Of a stretch of 64,000 bases of DNA, positions 4,196-19,319 are shown one piece after another (position 1 is the stretch's first letter; each line of letters opens with the position of its first letter). The stretch covers positions 62,001 through 126,000 of the forward strand of contig JBLDXI010000024.1 in assembly GCA_047495785.1 (NCBI GenBank), written 5' to 3'. The notes beneath the pieces were generated by a model, which saw only the letters and a program-made list of their open reading frames with translations, made no database searches and was not told the DNA's origin. This DNA comes from Lepidodermella squamata. Its lineage: Eukaryota; Animalia; Gastrotricha. Made by a program: the position numbers and the translations under genes.

Positions 4196-6774
4196 ATGAT
4201 TCAGGCCGCAGATATCTATAAATTGTTTGTATTAATGGTTCTATGCTGCGACTGTTATAGCCGCGAAATTGTCGCGCCGCGTCAACGGGACAACCTTGAG
4301 GAGGGAAATTTTGCTGGCAAACAGTCTTTAGGGCTGCCAGCAAGCGCGCCGCGCAAGCCCGTGCGTTCAAGAAACATCACCAAACTTTGTAGGTTAAGCT
4401 AATTATACCTATCAGCCTTTTATAATTCGATTTTTTTGCAGATTTGTGGGAATCACTGCTTTTGCGAAGATTATTTCCGCAGAACAAGTCTTATAATCCG
4501 GAAATAAGGCCCGCAAAGCGCAAGCACGAGCCGGTCATTGTCACCGTAGAATTCGTCATGCGTCAAATAAATGATTTGGTAATTTCGCAAATTAGGCTCC
4601 ATCATAATAATGCCGCTCTTTTAAATTTCAGGTTGAAAAAAGTCAGCAAATTGTGATCAGTGGCTTCCTTAAAATAGTGAGCCATTATCTAATCATCAAC
4701 TTATCTTATTTATAGCCTTCTGTTTTTATAGACCTGGATCGACGAAAGGCTGATGTGGGATCCTGACGATTATGGCGGAATTGAGTGGGTTGTAGTTGGC
4801 ACGGATACTGTTTGGCTGCCCGACATAGCCCTAGTTAACAGCGAAAACCTGTATGGTGTCACCAAGGATGAACGATTTCCAGGTATAGAAATAGTATAAT
4901 TCTGCCACGCGAATTCCGAACTTCCGAATTTCCAGTGACCTTGACTGCCTCTGGAGAAGTATTCTATGTCCCGGCCGGAAAAATCATTGCTCGATGTAAC
5001 TTCGATCTTCGCTTTTTCCCGTTCGACTACCAGCTTTGCAAATACCGCTTCGAATCATGGGTTTACGAAGCTTCAACAGTTACCGTTGTTGGGACAAATT
5101 TCACCATCGACTACGATCACTACATCGACAACCACCAGGTTTATCTGAATTGATATATCGACCTTGGTTTTGAACTATTAATTTTAGTGGGAAATCGTTC
5201 TTAAATTTGTTAAAACGTCCATCGTCAAATATGAAGAGTACAGCTTCTCTCGAGTTGAATTCTATCTGCTACTACGCCGTAAATCTATCTACTTCGTCGC
5301 TTACACAATTTTCCCGTGTCTGGCGTTGTCATGGCTACAAATCATCTCCCACATGTTGCCGTTCACCGACAAGGAGCGCATCAACTTTGCGACTACAACA
5401 CTGGTATAATGTATCCTCAAATAGTTTTTAAACATTTTATTTTTGTGATTTTAGATCGCGTTTTCGGTGTTTCATGTCTCGATAGTCGAACAGATGCCGA
5501 AAACTTCACATGCCATACCGCTTCTGGCCGTCTACATCGATGGACTTATGTGCCTGATTGGTTCCAGTCTCGTGGAGTGCTTTTGCCTAATGAATTGGCT
5601 TTCAAAGGTTGGATGCAGCGTTCCATCGCCATTCCTTTGGTGCCATCTCGTTGAGCGATTAGGCGACTATTTATTCCTTGGGTCAAATGGGAGATATTGG
5701 CGACGTCAATATCTTCGTGTCTATTGCGCCATTAACGAGAAAGACCAGGAGAATGAGGAAATTCGTCAAGCAGAAGCCGAACAATTCGCGCCAGCTGACC
5801 GTAGTGGCCGCAAACGGCGGGGTAGTTTCACTCGAAAATTTAGCCGATTGGTCAAGTTAGTTTGGGATGTGCAATTATTAACCCGGTTTTTTATCGGGAC
5901 ATTGTATAGGTCAGGCCGGATCATAAAAAACCACGGAGAAGATGATGAAGCGGACGACTTGACGGAGGAAGATGTGCAGCGTCGAATCAAAATGGATGGG
6001 TCTGACATTCAAATGGTCATATCCATGGCTAAGCGATGGGGCTGGAAAACGCGCCGAACAAGCTTCCCGATGGACCTGTCCCTGTTCGGCGTTCGTCACG
6101 ACAGTGAACTTGATCCAGCTCAGATGGACGATATGACTGAACTCGACGCTATTGCCGGTGTTTGCCTGGGCGATCTTAAATCCGGCATTCCGTTCAATCT
6201 GATGCGTAACTTGCCAAGCGACATAGCAGAAGCCTCGGATTCGATTGATACAACTTCAGAAGGCAGTGTCATGTTCATGAACCGCCTGTCCGGCTCTTCG
6301 ACCGGGGTTCCGGTCGATCGCGTGCCGACAATAGGAATTATTTCTAAACTATGCCGGGCGATGTCAGACGCGACAACGGCCGGGAATTCGGGTCGAAAAT
6401 CAAGCCGCGATGCCGACTGGATGCAGACCGAGCGGCAACTGTCGACGGCGATCGCATATCTACGCGAGCTGAGCAAGGTGGTTCAAACGGGACTGGATGC
6501 GCACAATCTACGTCGCGAGTGCATCTCGATTTGGACACTGTTCATCACGGTTATCGACCGGGTTAGTGCAATTCTTTTTCGAAATGAAATGTATTTTTCA
6601 GATATATTTTTCGATTAACTAGTTGCTGTCACTGATACTTCTCATGTTCACTGCCTCTATGCCTATTGTGCTTTTTATTCTCTTTCCTCTGGTAATTTTA
6701 ACCGATTGGAAGATTCCCTTTACCTTAGTGTCATTTTACAGGTTGTTCCGATACCTGAATTGCCAGAATTTTGA
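4196..6774 (+). CDS. Cys-loop ligand-gated ion channel subunit (paralog B); about 9 exons
   Basis: Hydrophobic N-terminus; YNPEIRP; WLPDIALVNS; CNFDLRFFPFDYQLC; RFESWVY; M2 ERINFATTTLIAFSVFHVSIVEQMP; M3 PLLAVYIDGLM; RRECISIWTLFITVIDR then M4; TGA 6772-6774. Confidence 0.93.
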
Positions 6775-7172: not shown

Positions 7173-9289
7173 TCAAAGCTTAAAAAGAGCTCGGAAGGCT
7201 GTTCTAAATTCGGCACTGCTGAGGCAAAAAATGATCGGATTTATGAGAGAATTCGCGTAGCCGAGCCAGTTGATGCTCATCCTTATGATAGGATGCGACG
7301 GCAGGTAGTCGTAACACCGGCACAACGGCACGCCTAGCTCCAAGACGAAGTACGGCAGCCAGCAAATGATGAACGCCAGCGTTATGCTCATCGAAATGGC
7401 CGCCATTTTACGCTCCCGCTGCTTCCACACCGTCGGCCGTTCGATGAGGCCCGGCACTGACATAGTATCCGCCCGCCCACCGTCCTCCAGCGACGCCCCA
7501 TCCGGAGTGATAGCTTCCCCATTTTCGCCCGAACTTGGCTTGCTGATAATCAGAGCTGGTATGATAGAAATTCTTTGATTAACTCGAACCGCCTGCTGTT
7601 TAACGAGTGCCTCTGTTGCGCTTCGGTTGTTACTGCTCTTGCTATTATCATGATCGGCAGCCGATACCTTTTCACTGTCCATCCAGCTGTCACTAGCCAT
7701 TGTACCGGCGTGGTTGTAGGGTGCGGCGCAGCAGGTTGAATCTAGCGATTTTCCGCCGAAAATCCGACAACGCGCTGCTTGAGCTGTTGCTATCGGCCCG
7801 GTCGACAGCGCCAGCTTTCGACTTGTCCTGGTCGCTGCCAGGCAACGTCGCCTGCTCCACCACTGGCGACTGCATGTTGTTCGAAGAATCCTCAGCCCAG
7901 TCGTCCTCCGCCAGCGTCGACAGCGGGGTACTGCGCTCGAGCGTCGGCGCGCGTTTCCGCGGCGGCCCAAGTCGGGGATCGTCCGCCGCCAGTTTGAGCA
8001 AGTCCTTGAGCTCGACGGGCGATGCCGGGCCATGGCTTTTGCCGTTAAGGACAGGGCTTTTCGCAGCGAGTAGGTCGTCGTAATCTTGCGCTGATGAACT
8101 GCGGCGAACTTTACTTTCCCGTTTTGACGACCGCCGTTTCGCGAAGTATCCTTGACCGGGAATTGTTTGCGAGTTTGTCATCGACGACTTGCGCCGCTGC
8201 TGGGTAATCAATATTGACCGCCTCAGCTCCCTAAAAAATAACAGGTAGTCACTAAAATTAATGAGTGATTTTGGAAACTTACGCTAGAGGGGCGGCTAAG
8301 TTAACTCGCTGGCGGATTCTTCGGCGAACTTCTACGTAAATTCGAATGTAAATAGCGATTATGCAGCAAGTAGGAATGTAGAAAGCGACTGTTGTTCCGA
8401 AAATAGCGAACCACGGGTCGCCGGATACTAGGCATTGACCGGTTTTCGACGACGCGAGTTCAGGATCTCGCCAACCCATTACCGGAAGCAGTGAAAGACA
8501 GGCAGCTCCGACCCAAGAGGCAACTGTAATTAATCAAATAATTCACTTTCGAGGTCACAAAGCCAATAATGTACCTAGCATTGAAGTGACCCATTTTTTG
8601 CGTGAATGAAAGTACTGCACCCTAGTGGCTGACAGGTATCTGTCGATGGCGATGGCGACAAGGTGGAAAATGGAAGCCGTACAAAAGTTGACATCGGTAA
8701 TGACGAATACCGTGCACATGAAATCGCCGAGAAACCACAGCTCCGAAATTTCGTTCAGCAGCGCAATAGGCATAACAAATATGGAAACTAGCACACCGGT
8801 GACGCCCATCGAAACTATTGTCCTGTTGAAGACGGCTCGCCGCATTGACCTTTGCGACAATATTACGACTATCAGCAGCAGGTTTCCGATCAAAGTCAAC
8901 AATATCAGCGTACCTATAAAATTTAAAGAAACCGATTAATCCTAAATTTGGAGGAGATACTAGAAAATTTGCATACCCAAAAAGGCAACAATAGGAATAA
9001 CAGTCGAAGCAGGAAGAAATTTGGGTCTTGTTCCGAGAAACTCTTCAACTACCGAAGTTGTCGATTCGTTGCTGTAGTTGAATGAAGGCGAAAATGTAGC
9101 AGCTGCACTTCTGTTCACCGGAGCAGCTAGTGAGTCGAGGGTAGAAGGCGAAACAAAAATGAAGGCTTCATCATCGCCGATCAAAGTTGTGCCGTCGCCG
9201 TAGCCGGACGAAACCGGCCACATGGTCATGTCATGCTGGAAGGTAACGTTGAGCCCGCTGCCTTCATAGTCATAGACAGCTATCACCAT
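7173..9289 (-). CDS. Rhodopsin-family biogenic amine GPCR, serotonin 5-HT1-like, long third intracellular loop
   Basis: TM1 GN; TM3 TDVNFCTASIFHLVAIAIDRY (D3.32, DRY); TM5 FGTTVAFYIP; TM6 RERK...FIICWLPYF; TM7 WLGYANSLINPIIF. GT-AG introns near 8976-8914, 8575-8524 and 8282-8231. A frame change near 7700 needs a further intron or an indel. Confidence 0.88.
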
Positions 9290-10718: not shown

Positions 10719-12218
10719 TCAATTACTGCCATCGAACATCGAGGGTAAAACGAGTGCACGGGCATCGACAGCTCCTAGGGTGCAGTGGATAGAGTCAAAA
10801 AATGATGATGCCCCGCCACAGCCGTAATTCTCAGCGTAGACTGACCTAACAGGATACATCTTTGAACGTTAAACAACTCAAAGCTGATCAAAAATGACTC
10901 GAAACTTGCATGTAAAGAGATGGAAGATTCAGCTGCTTTGCTTTCCTTGCGCACATCGTGAAAATCTGCGAAAAAAATTGGAGATAAATCAATTTGAAAA
11001 ATTAAATGTTCTGTACCTTTTGGCAAGCATCCGGTACTCCATCCGGTTCAAACATCCCACAAGCGAAATCGACTGCCACACCGTAGCGATGTAAAATCGA
11101 AGGGCTGCCTCCAGAAGCAAGAACCGGAAAAATTCCTCCAACTAACGATTTGACAGTTAATGGTAGGCTTTAACAGCAATAATTTAAGGTGAATTGAAGG
11201 TGGGAACAATTATTTATTACCTAGTCTGGCCGTAGTAAGTTATCGAAAATGTCCCGATGCTATTAAGGAGGTTTGCGTCAATGCACATGGCGCCAGAATT
11301 GAGGGTGCGGGCAGCTCGACCCGAGCACATATCCAGAACATTGGCAAACGCGCTCGATTGGGAACTCTGCTGGACATTATTAGCCTCCGGAATTGTCGGC
11401 AACAGAAACAACGTCCCAGCTTTGACTAGCTCCAGCAATCGGCAGGCTTCAGTTTGCTGCGATAAATCTTTGGTAAAGGATGACAAGTTAACTAGAATAT
11501 TCTGTAATAATATTCATACTGCACTGGGCCGGAGTAGCTTGTCGCTTATTTCGGTTATTAGCCGAGGACGTACTGTTGATTGGCATTAGAAGGTCTTGTT
11601 GCTGCTTGAACAAGTTTAGCAGAGACTTGGCCAGACGCTTCTGTTCACTGACATTCATGCTCAAGCGATCTGGAACCGGGCTGCCTGGACCCAGGACTGT
11701 CGCAGTTTCTGTCTTTTGTGAGGAAAATGTTGATAAGGCGGCTTGGGCGATAGCCACAAATCGATCGACCGAGTCTGGCTCGAGAGCAGCTCGACTGTTA
11801 GCGATGGATTCACTGCCGAAGTGATAGGTCTTCGGTTCTGAAGGAGGTGGAATGTAAACGGGGCGTCGGGTGGTCGTCTTTGGATCTGCGTCATTTATGA
11901 ATATTTGTGACTGGATAACCAAAAAATCGAATTATATCGAATTCTAATTATTCAAATATTTTATTTGTATACCCGTCCATCGATCACTTTTGCGAGCTCG
12001 CTTCGATCAAAGTCGATCGCACATTCACGACGCGCCACTGATGAAGAGCCGACAGCCTGTCGCGTCGGGTTTAGCGAAGTTACGTACGTGGTCTCTTGCG
12101 CCCACCACGAACAGCGACAAGAGCAGTTTAAAGCTGGTGGCGCAACGGTCGGTCCTGCGGAAAAGCCGAACCGAACTTGCAACAACCCAAGCAGTAGCAC
12201 CGATGTGAATCGAAGCAT
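10719..12218 (-). CDS. Secreted LAS/peptidase M15-like zinc metallopeptidase (D-Ala-D-Ala carboxypeptidase / Hedgehog-N fold), paralog 1; 5 exons up to the last intron plus a terminal exon
   Basis: Signal peptide MLRFTSVLLLGLLQVRFGFS. Spliced C-terminal domain ACRLL...SAFANVLDMCSG...MCIDANLL...SILHRYGVAVDF...FDSIHCTLG. H-x6-D at 11091-11068, third His at 10785-10787. TGA 10719-10721. Confidence 0.68.
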
Positions 12219-12631
12219 CAAAATTCAAAGGCGGTGGAAAAAGTGTTTATACACCAATGAGTAACACAGGTTGTTCAACTTTATTGCTGAATCAATGTTT
12301 ACCTTGAGTGGGCTTCTACTATACCTACTGCAACACCGCCTTCTTCGTTTACAAAATGGAAGTGAAGACATTCCTTCAGATGCTCGGGATAGAACTGCGT
12401 GGGTTCAAAGCATCGCAGTTCAGGTTATTTTTCATAAAATTAATGCTTTATTGAAGTGAAACCGGATTCTATTTCACCGAGGTGGTGCGAAGCATATATA
12501 ATGGATCTCTTATTTTCTTACAAAAAATATTTTTAAATTTGCAATGATTGCAAATAAATTATATATAAAATAAGGGTGAGATGTAGGTATCTTAGCCAAG
12601 GTCAAATATTTCGCTTGTTATTCAATCGAAA

Positions 12632-14070
12632 TTATTCATCGTTTTCTTCCGTTTCAAGATTATTCGTTGCACCTGCTGGTGATTTCTTCACGTTGGTTAG
12701 GCGAACTAGTGATTCAGCACTGACAGTGTCGCTTTCCTCATCTTCGCTGCCTAGAATTTCCTTCGGCACACTGCCGAATCCCAGAGTGCAGTGGACCGAA
12801 TCGGTAATTCTAGCTGCGTTTTTGTCGCAGCCATGCTCTTCGGCAGGAAAATTGATAGGGAAGAAATTAAGCTTAGATTTACGGACAGATTTTACGCACA
12901 GCTCAGAAATCTATTTCAAGTGAAATATAATCGAGGTTTTTAATTTATTGGATTTATTACCTTGCTGCACAGTTCAGCTTCGTTGTTTGTACCATCACTT
13001 CGGAATCCGACGCACATGAAATCAACAGCACCACCGAATCCATGCATCACGGATACCCCTTGGGTATTAGTCTTGTTGCCCGAAGCTAGTGATTTAACGA
13101 ATAACGGCTGGGAAGAGAAAGCGAAGTACTCGTTCGCAATCTCGCCGATGTTGTCTAACATACCAGCGTCTAAGCAAACCTCGTTACCCGAGGAGGCCTG
13201 AGCCTTTCGGCCATTGCAAAGGTCAAAGATGTTGCTGTACGCGCTGGCAGTACCAACTCGGCTGCCGATGGATGTACGGCTGGTAGCATTCGCCTCGCGC
13301 ACGTAATCTACCAGGACTGGCATCAAAAACAGCGGCGAACCATGTTTTGCGAGCAGATCACATGCGGCCTTCTTAACTGCCTCCCCACAGCCCGAGTCTG
13401 CCGCTAGCCCCATAGTCCTCGTAGTTGATGGACGAGGCCGAGGCGTAGTAGTTGATGAAGTCGCCGCGCTGACGATCGGTCGGTTGTCGTAAATACTTTT
13501 GAATGCACGTTGGACGTTCCTCTTTTGCTCCTCAGTTAGAGGACTTCGAGGAGGCGGCAGGACAGAGTAGATCTGCTGCTGAAGTAGAATGCCGCTGCGT
13601 TCCGATAGGCCATTTTTCTCAGCCAAAGGGGCGAGGGCGCTCTGCAGGGCTTCGATAGCGAATACTGCATAAGGATCCGTGACGGCATCAGGCGAGGGCA
13701 ACACGGGGCCGGGGAATGTCCGAGAGCATAGGCCACATTTCGGCGTCAAAGTCGATGTGGATGTGGATGTGGATGTTGGCCACGTACGCACAGGCTCTCG
13801 GATTCGCGGTCGCGAAGTGCTAGCCGCCGTTGCAACAGTTTGTGGCGTAGTCGGCTCAGTTGGTGGCTGTGTCGAGGCTGATGTGGATGTTGGCAACGTA
13901 CGCGCAGATTCGCGGCGTCGTGTGCGCGAAGTGCTACCCGCCGTTGCAACAGTTTGCGGCGTAGTCGGCTCAGTTTCTGCTGCGAGAGGTCGCTTCGCCC
14001 GTGACTGCGGCTGGCAGCTGCAGACAATTGCGACGGCGAGTAGAATTCCAGCTATTTCCCAAAAATTCAT
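12632..14070 (-). CDS. Secreted LAS/peptidase M15-like zinc metallopeptidase, paralog 2; 2 exons (intron 12911-12960)
   Basis: Signal peptide MNFWEIAGILLAVAIVCSC and S/T/P-rich repeats. ACDLL...SAYSNIFDLCNG...VCLDAGML...VMHGFGGAVDF...TDSVHCTLG aligns with paralog 1, which has an intron at the same position. TAA 12632-12634. Confidence 0.7.
13762..13974 (-). repeat. Two-copy 114-nt intragenic tandem repeat (TEPTTPQTVATA.STSR.R.RE..RT.PTSTS)
   Basis: Near-identical units ending at 13860 and 13974 on the + strand (gccgttgcaacagtttg..gcgtagtcggctcagt). Confidence 0.85.
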
Positions 14071-14624
14071 TTTAATATCTGAACCTATTCGGTTTTTATA
14101 AAGTTGAATTGATCTGTCGAATCTTTGTTAAAAAATTGTCTAAAAAATTGGAATTAATTTTCCTAATCGCGGCCATGCCACTACGCCGACTTCAGTGGGA
14201 GTATTATTAAGCGCCCACATGAATCATTTTGAGTAAAAAAATTAATTTAAATAAGTAATAAAACACCGGACGAATTACATACTTGATTCTAGGTAAGTAA
14301 TACTACTGGGAATTCCACTCATGGTTCGTTAATTATTTAATGAGGAGCTATTTTTAATTGCACCGTCGAGTCGTATTACCTGTCACGAAAAGAAACAGTT
14401 TGATAGAATCGGTCGCTCTTTATTGCCTTTATTTTAATACACCTTGGGGACATGCCCAAAGCCAGACGCATTTTTATAGCTTATACGTCATATCATACAT
14501 CTGTTTTTTAACAACCAAACAGTGAGCCAACGAAAAAAAAACGAAACAATAGCTGCATCATTTATAAATTGGAAAGATACTCGGACGTTTATATTGCTCC
14601 AGGTAAAAAAGGTAGGTCTCGCAA

Positions 14625-16557
14625 TCAATCCCCCTCGGCATACTCGAATTCTGCCCCGCTTTCTTGCTCCGCTAATAGCCGTGTAAATCGGTTCGGCCCA
14701 ATCTTGTCTCCACTTCGCAAAAATTTATGCGTTTGCGGGTTGTCGTTGGCCGTTTTTCGATCGTCCCAATTACTGGCGGGTAGTTGATCTGTCGCAATCG
14801 CCTCCTTAATCATTGCTTCGAGGCCACGAATTCGAACGAGAACTGCCGTATGATCGTTAATATGAACTCCCAAAACAGCGGTGTCGCGATTTTCCAATAT
14901 CAAACCAACGCTAAATATAAGAAAAATTTAAGAAAAATGAATAAAGGAAAACTCGAAATTTCTTACGGGAATATGAAAGGATCTTCGATGTACATGTAGC
15001 GAACAATTGGAACCGAGTTGAGCAAGTCTTTGGCGATGTGAAGAGGATCACTGACGTAGACGACGCGATAAGGCGGGTTAGCACTCGGGTCTGCTTTCAA
15101 GAGAACGACGTTGGTCGTGTAATACCGCCGCGTATCCGACGTCCGCTTCTTGAACAAAGTCACGTGTCCAAAACCGATGTAGTAGCTGCCCTGGTAATGC
15201 ACGAAGGGCGTACCACCGCGTAAGTGATGCTTCAAATCGTCGAAAATATTCTCCTGTGCAGTACCAGCTGCGTAAACTATCTGGCACTGGAAACGGTCGT
15301 CACATTCCAACACGCGTAATGGGTCCAAGTTGTGGACGAAGTGGATGGTTTGAGGTGGGGTGAGCTTCGAGCCCGGCCGCGGCTTTCTCGGCGGCAAATT
15401 GAAGGCCGACCAGTGTTTGTCCCGCGGGAATGACTCGTTAGGATTGTCGAGCATTGGCGAAAAGCCGCGGATGACGGGGTAATTGATCCTATTCTTGCGA
15501 TAATCCCATATCAACGTGTAATCCATCGCCTTGTAATCAAGCCCATTCATGCCGGTGTTGAAACTAACAAACAGGTTCGAGCGGTTGAAAGCCGGGAAAA
15601 GTCGAGGCTCGATTGGCCCATCGCCTATTGTAGAACCACCATTCGTTGGAATACCCTATATACATTATTTAGATGCTGAATTCAGCTGACAGTCAAGTTC
15701 ATTACCATCAAGTGCCCTGGGTCGATGGGTTGGAATTTATTATCGTAACTTTGAGCGTAAAAATAATTGTCGAGAAAAGCGTTTTTCGGCCAATTATTCT
15801 TGTCCTCGTAACGCTCCCGATCGAGCCAAATCCGCATAATGACGACCAGCCGACCTTCGCCACCGTTGTAGTCGCGATCCCAATATAAAGCAGGACTAAA
15901 AAATTTATAAAATTAATTTATAAAATTATAATTAATATTAATATTATATAAATTATTATAATTATAAAAAATCTAGCTAATTTCTTACCTGTTTGCATAA
16001 AACACATTTTCTTCCATCGGATCAGGAAACATGGTTTTGACGCGCCGTTCGACCATTGGCGAGAAGCTGTACATCATGCTTGTTGTAACCATGTGAGCAC
16101 TGAGCATTTTCGCGAGTCGGGTCAATGTCGGTGCCACACCGTCTGCGGTGGCATTTTTTAGCAGAAGTGTTCCATCATGAGGAGGCGTGTAGAAGAACCC
16201 GCCCGACATGCGAGTTTTGACTTTGAACTTTTCATGAACGTTGAACACGAGTTGCGTCGACGAGTTAGGATAAATTGGCCCGTCGACAGCAAAAGCGGAT
16301 ATGTCCTGTTTAGCGGGAGCTCGGCGGCCGCGAGTGTGCTCGCTGTCCAGGTCGATGAGTGGCGCCATGCCAACTTTTACCAGCTTATCCGCATTGCCCG
16401 TAACTTCTGAGGCGTAGTCGCTGTGTTGCGACCGTGATGCGGCTCGCACTTGGTCGGACGAAAATTGCACGCCGGCATTGAATGAGAAAATGGCGACTAG
16501 GGTGCAAACGATGAGGAAGACAAAAATGCGCAGGATCGGGTTGCTTTTCATCAGCAT
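14625..16557 (-). CDS. Type II membrane protein, putative five-bladed beta-propeller glycosyltransferase/glycoside phosphorylase (fungal beta-mannosyltransferase GT91 / GH130-like), paralog 1; 4 exons
   Basis: N-terminal signal anchor LRIFVFLIVCTLVAIFSF. Motifs YANSPAL, MRIW, DNYFY, GDGPIEPRLF, RDKHW, HLRGGTP, GFGH, RRYYT, FIFPVGL recall GPEDPR/EKNW/LRGGT motifs. Start codon uncertain because the frame is open upstream. Confidence 0.55.
15897..15988 (-). repeat. Nearly pure A/T low-complexity intron with degenerate TTATA/AATT repeats
   Basis: aaatttataaaattaatttta...ttataattataaaaa between GT and AG sites of the GT-like gene. Confidence 0.6.
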
Positions 16558-17510
16558 TTGGCATGCGTTCGAGTTGCCGCCATCGAAGAAGCGCACCGAG
16601 GTGCCACCGACGTGATACACGGCACCGCCGGCGTCGACGCCCGTTTTGCGCGGCTTTATGGCTCCGGCGTAGAGCGTAATTAGGCGGCAGAGGCTGGGGG
16701 CTCGTCCGGGGGTTCGATGACAACTGAGATAGCGTCCGAAATCGCCCCTGTCGTCGTCTTTCCGGCGGTTGAAAAGTTGAGAGGCGACGTCGCTGGTATC
16801 ACGACGCTAATTTAAACATAAAAATTGACAATGGCGGGCCTAGATGAAAGGTAAAATTGTTCGTGAAAATTTGTTAGTTTTGCGAGAGGCGAGAGAACTG
16901 GCGCCCCTAATAACTACTATAGTTTCGTGAGTAGTAGTTTCTGTGCTACGTGATGCGCCGATTGGCGAGTGTTTGTAGCGAGCGCACAACCTGTTACCTG
17001 TCTGCCGCCATGTTTGCACGCACCATTACTACGTTGTCGTCGTAGTACTACGACTACTACGGCGAGCTCACTTGAGTTTGCGCATTACGGGCGCTATGCT
17101 AAAGTGTAGTGAGGCCGAATAATGAATTCGCGCCATTGTGTTTTGTGGGGTCGCGCAGGTTACGACTGTCTGAGCTCGCCTGCTCGAGAGGCGACCCATG
17201 GTGCGCTCGCATGCCTGTCAGATGACGCCAGCACATAACAGTACTCCACCACGTTGCGTGCGCACGCCGACTGCCGCCGCCGACAGTAGAGCAACCCGAT
17301 GGTATCACTTCATGCAGTATCAACCTTACACCCACAGCTACATAGTCTTCACGTTGCAACAATTTTTTGGATTTGTTAAAAGTATTGTTATAAGCAACAC
17401 ATTCAAGTACCGTTATTTATTCACTCTCACACTGTCAAAAATATAGTTGGCAAAGCAAATAACTTTTTTGAAGATCTATGTCTCCTTGAACAACAGCTGG
17501 GTCGACTTTT

Positions 17511-19319
17511 TTAAGGCGAAAATGTCGAACTAACAAGGGTCTCTAATTTGACACCTTGGTAAGACTCGTCATCACTGCCGCTGCGGAAAAGTAGACCCGA
17601 CTCATCACTCGCTGCTAGCCTTACGAAATGATTAGGCCCGATGGTCAGTTCTTTACGCCCAGCGACAGGTGGCTGCTCGTTTTCACTTGCATCGATAACG
17701 TCACGCATGATCATTTCAAGGCCGCGAATTCGAATTATATGAGCCGTGTTATCGTTGATATGCAGGCCAACTAGAGCAGTATCGCGATTCTCAACTATTA
17801 AACCGACTCTGTAAAAATAGCAAAAAATTAAAGAAAAAAATGTCTCACAAATATTACGGGAAAATGAAGGGATGTTTGATGTAAAGGAAGCGGACAATAT
17901 CTATCGACTTCATCAATGTCTCATCCAGGTGAATAGGATAGCTGATGTAGACGATTTCGAACGGTGGCGAGCGGCTGGGATCGGCTCGAAGCACAACAAT
18001 GTTGCCGGTGTAATACCGGGTCCAATTTTCGGAAAATAAAGTCACGTGAGCGATGCCGACGTAGTACGGCCATTGGTACAAAACGAATCTATAAGAGATG
18101 AAATCGAGTTGAAAAAATTCATAAAAAAATTTGCAAGCTAACGGTGTTCCGCCTCGAAGATGATGTTTGTCGTCACGGAAAATATTCTGGTCGAGCGTAC
18201 CAGCTTGGAAAATGATCCTGCAGCGAAAACCAGGCGTGCATTCTAAGATTCGAAGCGGCTCCAGACTGTGGACGAAATGAACAAGAGGCTGGTCGGAATA
18301 GGTTGTGTTCGATCGAGGCATGGTGAACGCCATCCAGTGCTTATCCCGAGGCAAACTGCTTTCAGAACCTTGAAACATCGGGCTGTTCGAAGGTTCAGAG
18401 GTCAATTCTAGCGGGTCAATAAAAAAGAATAACCATACTTGGGTGGGTTAATCTTGGGAAAATGCAGCCTGCTTTGCCGATAGTCCCATATCATTGTGTA
18501 GTCGATGAACCGCCGTTGCTGATCGTAAGTGCCAGTATTGAAGGAAACATAGAGACTAGAGCGATTGAATGCTGGAAATAGGCGAGGTTCGATTAGACCA
18601 TCCCCCAGAGTTGCCCCAGCCGAAGTAGGAATAGCCTGGGAAAATAGCGGAAAATTCAACTAAACTTTACCGCAAAAATAATAAAAATAACTTTCAACCA
18701 TTAGTTGGCCAGGATCAAGCGGTTGCATGTCGCGGTCGAACGTTTGCGTGTAAAAATAATTGTCGAGAAAATGGTTCAGCGGCCAGTCGATTTTATTTAT
18801 CTCGTACCGCTCTCGAGCCAACCAGATTCGCATGATAACTATCAAACGACTGCTATCCGCGTCCCAAAACAACGCAGGGCTGTTCGCGTAGAAGACATTT
18901 TCATTCGGCTCGTCTGGAAACATCGTTTTCACGCGCTGTTCAACTTGCGGCGAAAAGTTGTGGACGAAGCTGGTTTCAATTTTATGCCGGTGCCAGTACA
19001 GCTTCTCGATTCGCGTCGATGCGTTCAACCACATGGCTGCTCCATATTTAGGAGGTATCGCTTTCGTCTTGAAGACAGCGCCTTTAAGGCTAGCCTTTAC
19101 ACGAAATCGCTCGTTGACATTTTGCAGTAGAAGAAGTGTCGATGAATGGGGGAAAATAATCCCTGAAGCCGATAGAGCATCGGTATCCCTCGCGCTACCT
19201 TTTCGATGAAGGCTAACATTTTTCTCAATCTGTTTATCCAAGCTCAGAATCAGTATGATGGAGCATAGGGAAAACGCCACTAGAACAGTGATCCAATAAT
19301 ATGGAAATCGAGGTTTCAT
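17511..19319 (-). CDS. Type II membrane GT91/GH130-like protein, paralog 2; about 5 exons
   Basis: MKPRFPYYWITVLVAFSLCSIILIL anchor. Closely similar to paralog 1 (RVKTMFPD, ENVFYANSPAL, GDGLIEPRLFPAFNRS, RDKHW, HHLRGGTP, FIFP|VGL). Shares intron positions at LM|xIPT and FP|V. Confidence 0.55.

Follow-up and report, generated by a model that had tools for sequence, protein, structure and literature searches.

Tandem genes for secreted, cysteine-rich pro-proteins in the gastrotrich Lepidodermella squamata, with a possible LAS-type zinc site

Gene structure, expression and constraint

Two paralogous genes, here called A and B, lie in tandem on the minus strand between positions 10719 and 14070 of a 64,000-nucleotide (nt) stretch of the genome of the gastrotrich Lepidodermella squamata (assembly GCA_047495785.1, contig JBLDXI010000024.1, positions 62,001 to 126,000 of the forward strand; this whole stretch is referred to as the window, and all coordinates are those of the window unless stated otherwise). 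The surrounding sequence is eukaryotic and rich in introns. An initial annotation, made from the DNA sequence alone, had described the pair as secreted, bacterial-type zinc peptidases of the LAS/M15 group. The tandem paralogy is confirmed, since the two proteins share 29% identity over 247 amino acids (aa) (blastp, E 3e-29). Genes A and B are real, expressed and constrained tandem paralogues of a lineage-restricted family of secreted pro-proteins, and we consider below whether their C-terminal domain may function as a zinc domain of the LAS type.

Gene A comprises six exons and encodes 405 aa, with its stop codon at 10719-10721, and gene B comprises two exons and encodes 462 aa from an ATG at 14070-14068 (Table 1). 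All six introns (five in gene A and one in gene B) are supported by splice joints in contigs of the public run X1; they measure 50-64 nt, and five are GT-AG and one is GC-AG. The contigs of X1 are spliced and those of a second run, X2, follow the genome collinearly; X1 accordingly holds spliced transcripts of both genes. Genes A and B are thus transcribed and spliced, and the X1 joints bear out the earlier observation that introns separate the motifs discussed below.

The RNA contigs of X1 also overruled motif-guided first splice models, in which the motifs had been joined directly. The motif-guided model of gene A misses a 56-nt exon (10965-10910; IFTMCARKAKQLNLPSLYM), and the reading frame of the gene closes only when this exon is included. 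Exon 2 of gene B begins at 12910 and not near 12835, which adds ISELCVKSVRKSKLNFFPINFPAEE, the first 25 codons of the exon. The stretches gained in A and in B are homologous to each other, fall downstream of the H-x6-D motif and ahead of the last His, and supply the ninth conserved Cys. Whether or not the domain is of the LAS type, these corrected, RNA-supported gene models are required before the proteins are folded or expressed.

Three further features of the transcripts deserve mention. Intron 5 of gene A (10846-10909, minus strand) has a GC donor (GCAAGT...AG), the sole non-GT donor among the six, and is backed by an X1 joint with 1 nt of positional ambiguity. The X1 contig of gene A reaches 12420, at least 200 nt upstream of the ATG and 74 nt from the last covered base at the 3' end of gene B (12495); given this short gap in transcript coverage, genes B and A may be co-transcribed. 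An AG acceptor is found 8 nt before the ATG of gene B (ggttcag/atattaaaATG; 14071-14085) and would fit spliced-leader trans-splicing.

Run X2 differs from the window mostly by silent changes in both genes, with 10 synonymous and 5 non-synonymous differences in gene A (5 and 0 in its Cys domain alone) and 11 and 5, respectively, in gene B. This excess of synonymous over non-synonymous differences points to constraint on both proteins, and A and B are under purifying selection. Run X2 contains two versions of the contig at 11823-11960, a segment that spans intron 1 of gene A and the beginning of exon 2. One is identical to the window, and the other, which differs by 9 substitutions and a 3-nt deletion over 138 nt, is a divergent haplotype or comes from a second strain.

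Table 1. Exons of genes A and B, with window coordinates, encoded features and supporting evidence
Feature	Position	Strand	Encoded features	Support
Gene A exon 1	11973..12218	-	ATG at 12218, signal-peptide-like start, four Cys	X1 joint 11910/11973
Gene A exon 2	11520..11910	-	Pro-region; ends with furin-type site RNKR (11553-11542), then QATPAQC	X1 joints 11910/11973 and 11467/11520
Gene A exon 3	11221..11467	-	First half of nine-Cys domain (EAC, LFLLP, DMCSGR, MCIDANLL)	X1 joints, alignment
Gene A exon 4	11017..11167	-	PLTVKSLVGG ... SILHRYGVAVDFACG; H-x6-D motif (HRYGVAVD) 11091-11068	X1 contig 11017-11167, joints on both sides; hhalign register
Gene A exon 5	10910..10965	-	56 nt, IFTMCARKAKQLNLPSLYM; followed by GC-AG intron 10846-10909	X1 joints 10965/11017 and 10844/10909 (1 nt ambiguity)
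Gene A exon 6	10719..10845	-	...NYGCGGASSFFDSIHCTLG... and TGA stop; DSIHC 10796-10782	Sequence, X1 joint, translation
Gene B exon 1	12961..14070	-	Signal-peptide-like start, T/P/S-rich 38-aa tandem repeat (13766-13975), pro-region, most of nine-Cys domain; HGFGGAVD 13044-13021	Sequence, X1, translation
Gene B exon 2	12632..12910	-	ISELCVKSVRKS...EEHGCDKNAARITDSVHCTLG, acidic tail, TAA stop; DSVHC 12802-12788	X1 joint 12910/12961, contig covering 12495-12910

Protein architecture and relatives

Proteins A and B share one layout, in which a signal-peptide-like start is followed by a pro-region with weakly similar helical segments and then by a C-terminal domain of ~190-200 aa with nine aligned Cys. 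The N-termini (A, MLRFTSVLLLGLLQVRFGFSAG; B, MNFWEIAGILLAVAIVCSCQ) are hydrophobic and signal-peptide-like by inspection only; on that footing the earlier call of secretion stands, as does that of conserved Cys spacing, all nine Cys of the domain being aligned. In gene A an R-N-K-R furin-type site lies directly before the Cys domain (RNKR/QATPAQC), and no canonical site of this kind was found before the domain of B (TTRTMGLAADSGC). Both proteins end 20-60 residues past the last His. The exon translations contain no Hint or any other Pfam domain, in agreement with the initial annotation, which had noted the lack of Hint. Near its N-terminus protein B has a T/P/S-rich, mucin-like stretch encoded by 1.8 copies of a 114-nt repeat with 87% matches, and a GATGTG microsatellite on the plus strand (13754-13776) corresponds to TSTSTS in the protein.

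An exhaustive phmmer search of 1.84 billion cluster representatives yielded a single true relative, the unnamed protein P0001 (E 1.7e-6), which aligns to the spliced A with E 5e-24 and to the spliced B with E 9e-18; the other match, P0002, was dismissed as a low-complexity false match. Three ENA metagenome assemblies are the source of P0001 and of the near-identical members of its cluster; their contigs are short, have AT-rich spacers and look eukaryotic. P0001 also has a furin-type site directly before its domain (RRTKR/QSSS); RRTKR is followed by HFRGLAVDFLCG, and the sequence ends in ...ITAAHCSY. A word-indexed search of 5.8 billion proteins, queried with the domain of B, P0001 and the family profile, returned nothing besides P0001. 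Among the genomes of 185,579 bacterial and archaeal species, motif-seeded scans with tblastn confirmation found no confirmed relative, and scans of the same kind found none in IMG/VR or in the JGI metagenomes. In the ESM Atlas, an embedding search with B gave one weak lead, a cluster assigned in part to PF08291 (score 0.85), and the feature searches otherwise gave no relative. Apart from this animal, the family is detectable in a single organism, which is known from ENA metagenome assemblies.

The open reading frame (ORF) directly upstream of the P0001 gene (L002:373-1185, equivalent to L001:3-716) was also considered as a divergent tandem paralogue, and it remains unproven, with blastp E values of at least 0.37 against A, B and P0001. 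By eye it contains C-I-D-A-D-L and E-H-F-A-I-D-L-L-C, resembling C-x-D-A-x-x-L and H...A-V-D-F-x-C of the family. If this ORF were truly a paralogue, the tandem arrangement would be old.

Conserved residues and comparison with known LAS domains

The two motifs singled out by the initial annotation are both present, namely an H-x6-D motif (HRYGVAVD in A, HGFGGAVD in B) within the longer H-x2-G-x-A-V-D-F-x-C and, 53-58 residues on, D-S-[IV]-H-C (DSIHC in A, DSVHC in B). Both fall in blocks conserved between A, B and the outside homologue P0001. The first motif of P0001 reads HFRGLAVD, and the H, G, A, V and D are invariant in all three proteins; the invariant last His appears as SIHC in A, SVHC in B and AAHC in P0001, and forms D-x-x-H in A and B. 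In the three-way alignment 35 of the 179 ungapped columns are invariant, and this set includes the nine Cys, LFL-P, C-x-D, P-x-x-V-x-S, S-x2-H-x2-G-x-A-V-D-F-x-C, G-C and H-C. The predicted mature domains correspond to about residues 206-405 of A, about 223-415 of B and 105-290 of P0001; those of A and P0001 have two His each, which are exactly the two invariant ones. This pattern of conservation is good indirect evidence of a specific function for the two invariant His, for instance in binding a metal, irrespective of how the domain folds.

In peptidases of the LAS group (clan MD) the first zinc motif is H-x(6)-D, usually in the form S-x-H-x2-G-x-A-x-D, and the third ligand is contributed by H-x-H or [DE]-x-x-H. 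Compared with the M15A and other MD-clan enzymes (E. coli MepK, Microviridae and phage M15 peptidases, the Streptomyces DD-carboxypeptidase), the A/B family has the block S-x(1,2)-H-x2-G-x-A-x-D-[FI] in register, a P-x-x-[VL]-x-S strand before it and a [VI]-H-x-[TD]-x-G block further on, and in the predicted model the order of helix, strand and two strands with His and Asp would also be alike. Relative to M15A, the Ser before the first motif is shifted one residue away from the His, and the Asp and the last His are 53-58 residues apart in the family versus 33 in MepK; neither H-x-D nor H-x-H is present. The family also differs from these enzymes in its nine disulfide-type Cys and in having introns, a pro-region and a furin site in an animal gene. 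The combination of H-x6-D and D-x-x-H in A and B resembles the arrangement in L-alanyl-D-glutamate phage peptidases (Ply500, PDB 2VO9), whereas P0001 is without the Asp.

Resemblance to Hedgehog is seen in the same two blocks. The Drosophila Hedgehog sequence in PMC6027127 has the same H-x6-D together with an I-[HY]-C-S-V block, so that H-x2-G-R-A-V-D corresponds to H-x2-G-x-A-V-D here, and I-[HY]-C-S-V to [IV]-H-C-T-L or A-H-C-S-Y here. It could be, therefore, that A and B carry a Hedgehog-related 'Hedge' domain, inherited from an animal ancestor of the Hh or Hedgling type, in which Hint was lost or never present and which acts as a signalling ligand; like Hedgehog, the proteins would be secreted and proteolytically matured. 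Yet no match to the Pfam Hedgehog signalling domain (HH_signal) or to another family was obtained at E <= 10, no Hedgehog structure appears among the fold matches, and the family has neither a Hint/Hog module nor the H-x-H that is characteristic of DD-peptidases (PMC6027127). Furthermore, the domain has nine Cys, many more than Hedgehog, and stands C-terminally behind a pro-region, unlike the N-terminal domain of Hedgehog. Descent from Hedgehog thus seems very improbable.

The initial annotation had spoken of bacterial-type peptidases that were horizontally acquired or ancient; taken literally, it would mean that an M15 peptidoglycan peptidase was acquired by transfer and now serves to digest or kill bacteria. 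The resemblance to M15 is confined to the motifs, and an animal precedent exists in the ascidian rusticalin-like proteins, secreted proteins whose C-terminal Hedgehog/DD-peptidase-fold domain has been attributed to transfer from bacteria (PMC6339383). However, the rusticalin-like domains keep a Peptidase_MD clan sequence match, by which Pfam clan searches recognise them, as well as their catalytic and substrate-binding residues (PMC6339383), whereas the A/B domains match nothing and lack the substrate-binding Arg of SGYR. The prokaryotic, IMG/VR and JGI scans described above produced no bacterial or viral relative, and the one protein found by phmmer is encoded on eukaryotic-looking contigs. 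Because these searches found no such relative, and because the genes have six spliceosomal introns and the layout of a eukaryotic secretory pro-protein (a signal peptide by eye, a pro-region and a furin site), a bacterial origin finds no support here, and this already disfavoured scenario is the least probable of those considered.

Profile and structure comparisons

The LAS/M15 interpretation was examined with hhalign against M15A profiles built from E. coli MepK with 80 relatives, a Microviridae M15 peptidase with 80 relatives, and a Rhodobacter phage peptidase. Locally, the family aligns best to M15A exactly over S..H..G.A.DF, where His falls on His and Asp on Asp, and column-shuffled family profiles reach the observed score in 1/150, 6/150 and 3/150 trials. 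An unrestricted alignment is collinear, with a helix, the P-x-x-V-x-S strand, the motif, G-C-G on G-V-G and V-H-C-T-x-G on V-H-I-D-T-G, and has no statistical weight. For structure prediction we used residues 100-290 of P0001 (P0001:100-290), for which AlphaFold with the single sequence gave a predicted local distance difference test (pLDDT) score of 29.5. The prediction was repeated with a hand-checked alignment of 13 rows, made of exon-wise fragments of A and B and including one 47-aa row from the L001/L002 upstream ORF. In the resulting model residues 13-137 are of moderate confidence and are predicted to form four helices, one of them long, a strand, and then two strands, E125-128 and E132-137, which hold the His and the Asp, respectively. 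A shape search among ESM Atlas models ranked a Peptidase_M15_2/M15_3 (DUF882) cluster second, with a template modelling (TM) score of 0.33, and a VanY cluster fourth, with a TM score of 0.32. These shape matches, like the PF08291 embedding lead, are hints, not results.

A number of observations weigh against a LAS fold. In sequence, H-x-H is absent from A, B and P0001, P0001 (TAAHC) lacks the Asp found three residues ahead of the last His in A and B, and the Arg of the M15 S-G-Y-R strand is missing, the aligned strand being VKSLVGG, VKSLASG and VGSIVGG. In the profile comparisons, the family reaches a probability of <1% against M15A (P 0.06-0.13); MepK against Microviridae, run as a positive control, reaches 97%. 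The motif test is, moreover, not independent, since the finding was picked for that motif, and when the segments flanking the motif are taken alone their similarity to M15A is at chance level (33/100 shuffles upstream and 12/100 downstream). Searches of Pfam with all exon translations and P0001 gave no relevant match at E <= 10 (one exon had two chance matches under the gathering score), PHROGs gave no match at E <= 10, and in the PDB phmmer returned just three unrelated chains (E 0.4-1.2) and the family profile none. As to structure, the AlphaFold model from the 13-row alignment has a mean pLDDT of 52 and a predicted TM score of 0.57, and its 54 C-terminal residues, 138-191, which include the last His, have a pLDDT <30. 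Foldseek gave noise in the PDB and in BFVD, a comparison of this model with the PDB reached a best Z of 3.8 and included no LAS or Hedgehog structure, and a TM score of 0.33 is near the random range. The LAS/M15 fold of the initial annotation is therefore neither proved nor excluded: the H-x2-G-x-A-V-D block does stand in M15A register, though weakly and short of significance, its flanks and the profile searches add nothing to it, and the fold searches, made with a model of low confidence, gave weak similarity to predicted M15 and VanY models but no LAS structure from the PDB.

These results bring forward an explanation in which the domain is an orphan, Cys-rich secreted module whose fold is unrelated to LAS, acting as a lineage-specific ligand, a matrix or cuticle component or an antimicrobial factor released from a pro-protein. 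On this view H-x2-G-x-A-V-D would resemble the LAS motif by coincidence, and its conserved His and Asp would have a different task, be it in another kind of metal site, in pH sensing or in structure. Every homology and fold search was blank or insignificant, as this explanation would have it, and the similarity to M15A is confined to one block of 8-12 residues. By our own estimate the motif has a chance of about 3e-4 of occurring in a protein of ~190 aa, and such an occurrence is to be expected by chance when very many proteins are read. A pro-region followed by R-x-K-R and a Cys-rich tail is also the usual layout of secreted ligands. Coincidence accounts less readily for the position of the motif in the most conserved block, with its His and Asp invariant, or for the other invariant His at the expected downstream distance of 53-58 residues, in a V/I-H-C-T/S block like that of Hedgehog. 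The predicted order of helices and strands would also fit LAS, and models of M15 and VanY are among the nearest shapes. We give this explanation a nearly even chance of being correct.

Genomic neighbourhood

Past the 3' end of gene A lie a transmembrane exon of a Cys-loop channel (PF02932) and a rhodopsin-family G-protein-coupled receptor spread over two ORFs (PF00001), at 5467-6615 on the plus strand and 7176-8902 on the minus strand. Next to gene B, further ORFs occupy 14963-18405 of the minus strand. That at 17857-18405 has a sub-threshold match to fungal-type beta-mannosyltransferases (PF12141, E 2.9e-5, 23.3 bits versus a cut-off of 28.3), which is unusual for an animal, and that at 14963-15550 has no Pfam match. 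None of these neighbours, be it the channel, the receptor or the beta-mannosyltransferase-like ORFs, gives a clue to the function of A and B.

Proposed function and implications

The reading that we prefer is that of a divergent LAS-like zinc domain that evolved in animals, is rich in disulfides, is released by a convertase and has a metal site of His, Asp and His. We judge it to have somewhat less than an even chance, and regard it and an unrelated orphan fold as about equally likely. Under the preferred reading the precursor of A or B would enter the secretory pathway, a proprotein convertase would remove the pro-region, at least in A, and the disulfide-bonded domain would be released outside the cell. 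There, a metal, most likely zinc, would be coordinated by three invariant residues, namely the His and the Asp of S-x2-H-x2-G-x-A-V-D and the His of the last conserved block ([IVA]-H-C-[TS]), in a geometry resembling that of LAS domains (Hedgehog and DD-peptidases). The Asp that stands three positions ahead of the last His in A and B could serve as the general base, as in L-Ala-D-Glu peptidases. The domain may act on peptidoglycan or on matrix, or have no substrate.

The A/B family should not be filed as M15, because it shows no significant similarity to that family, because H-x-H and the Arg of SGYR are absent, and because the second motif exists only as D-x-x-H in A and B. The domain may nonetheless function as a LAS-type zinc domain; that A and B hydrolyse peptidoglycan is speculation. 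A more far-reaching version of the idea would see in them animal-evolved, lineage-restricted, furin-activated, disulfide-stabilised LAS-type zinc enzymes, too divergent for profiles, of which at least two are expressed as tandem paralogues in a bacterivorous micro-invertebrate, and which would form either a new class of animal peptidoglycan peptidases or a free-standing Hedgehog-like zinc domain without Hint. We consider this version rather unlikely.

What the finding means depends on the nature of the domain. If it is not of the LAS type, A and B represent another lineage-specific family of secreted, Cys-rich proteins, unremarkable in itself, the annotation of which is useful for a poorly known phylum. 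If the LAS zinc site is real, the family would be a rare case of the Hedgehog/DD-peptidase superfamily in animals, distinct both from Hedgehog and from recognisable bacterial imports, and packaged as a convertase-processed pro-protein. A Hedgehog-like zinc domain without Hint would bear on how the Hedge domain arose. More generally, a LAS domain in this animal would be relevant to the debate whether zinc sites of the Hedgehog type work as peptidases, and to the question of how cell walls are digested by small bacterivorous animals.

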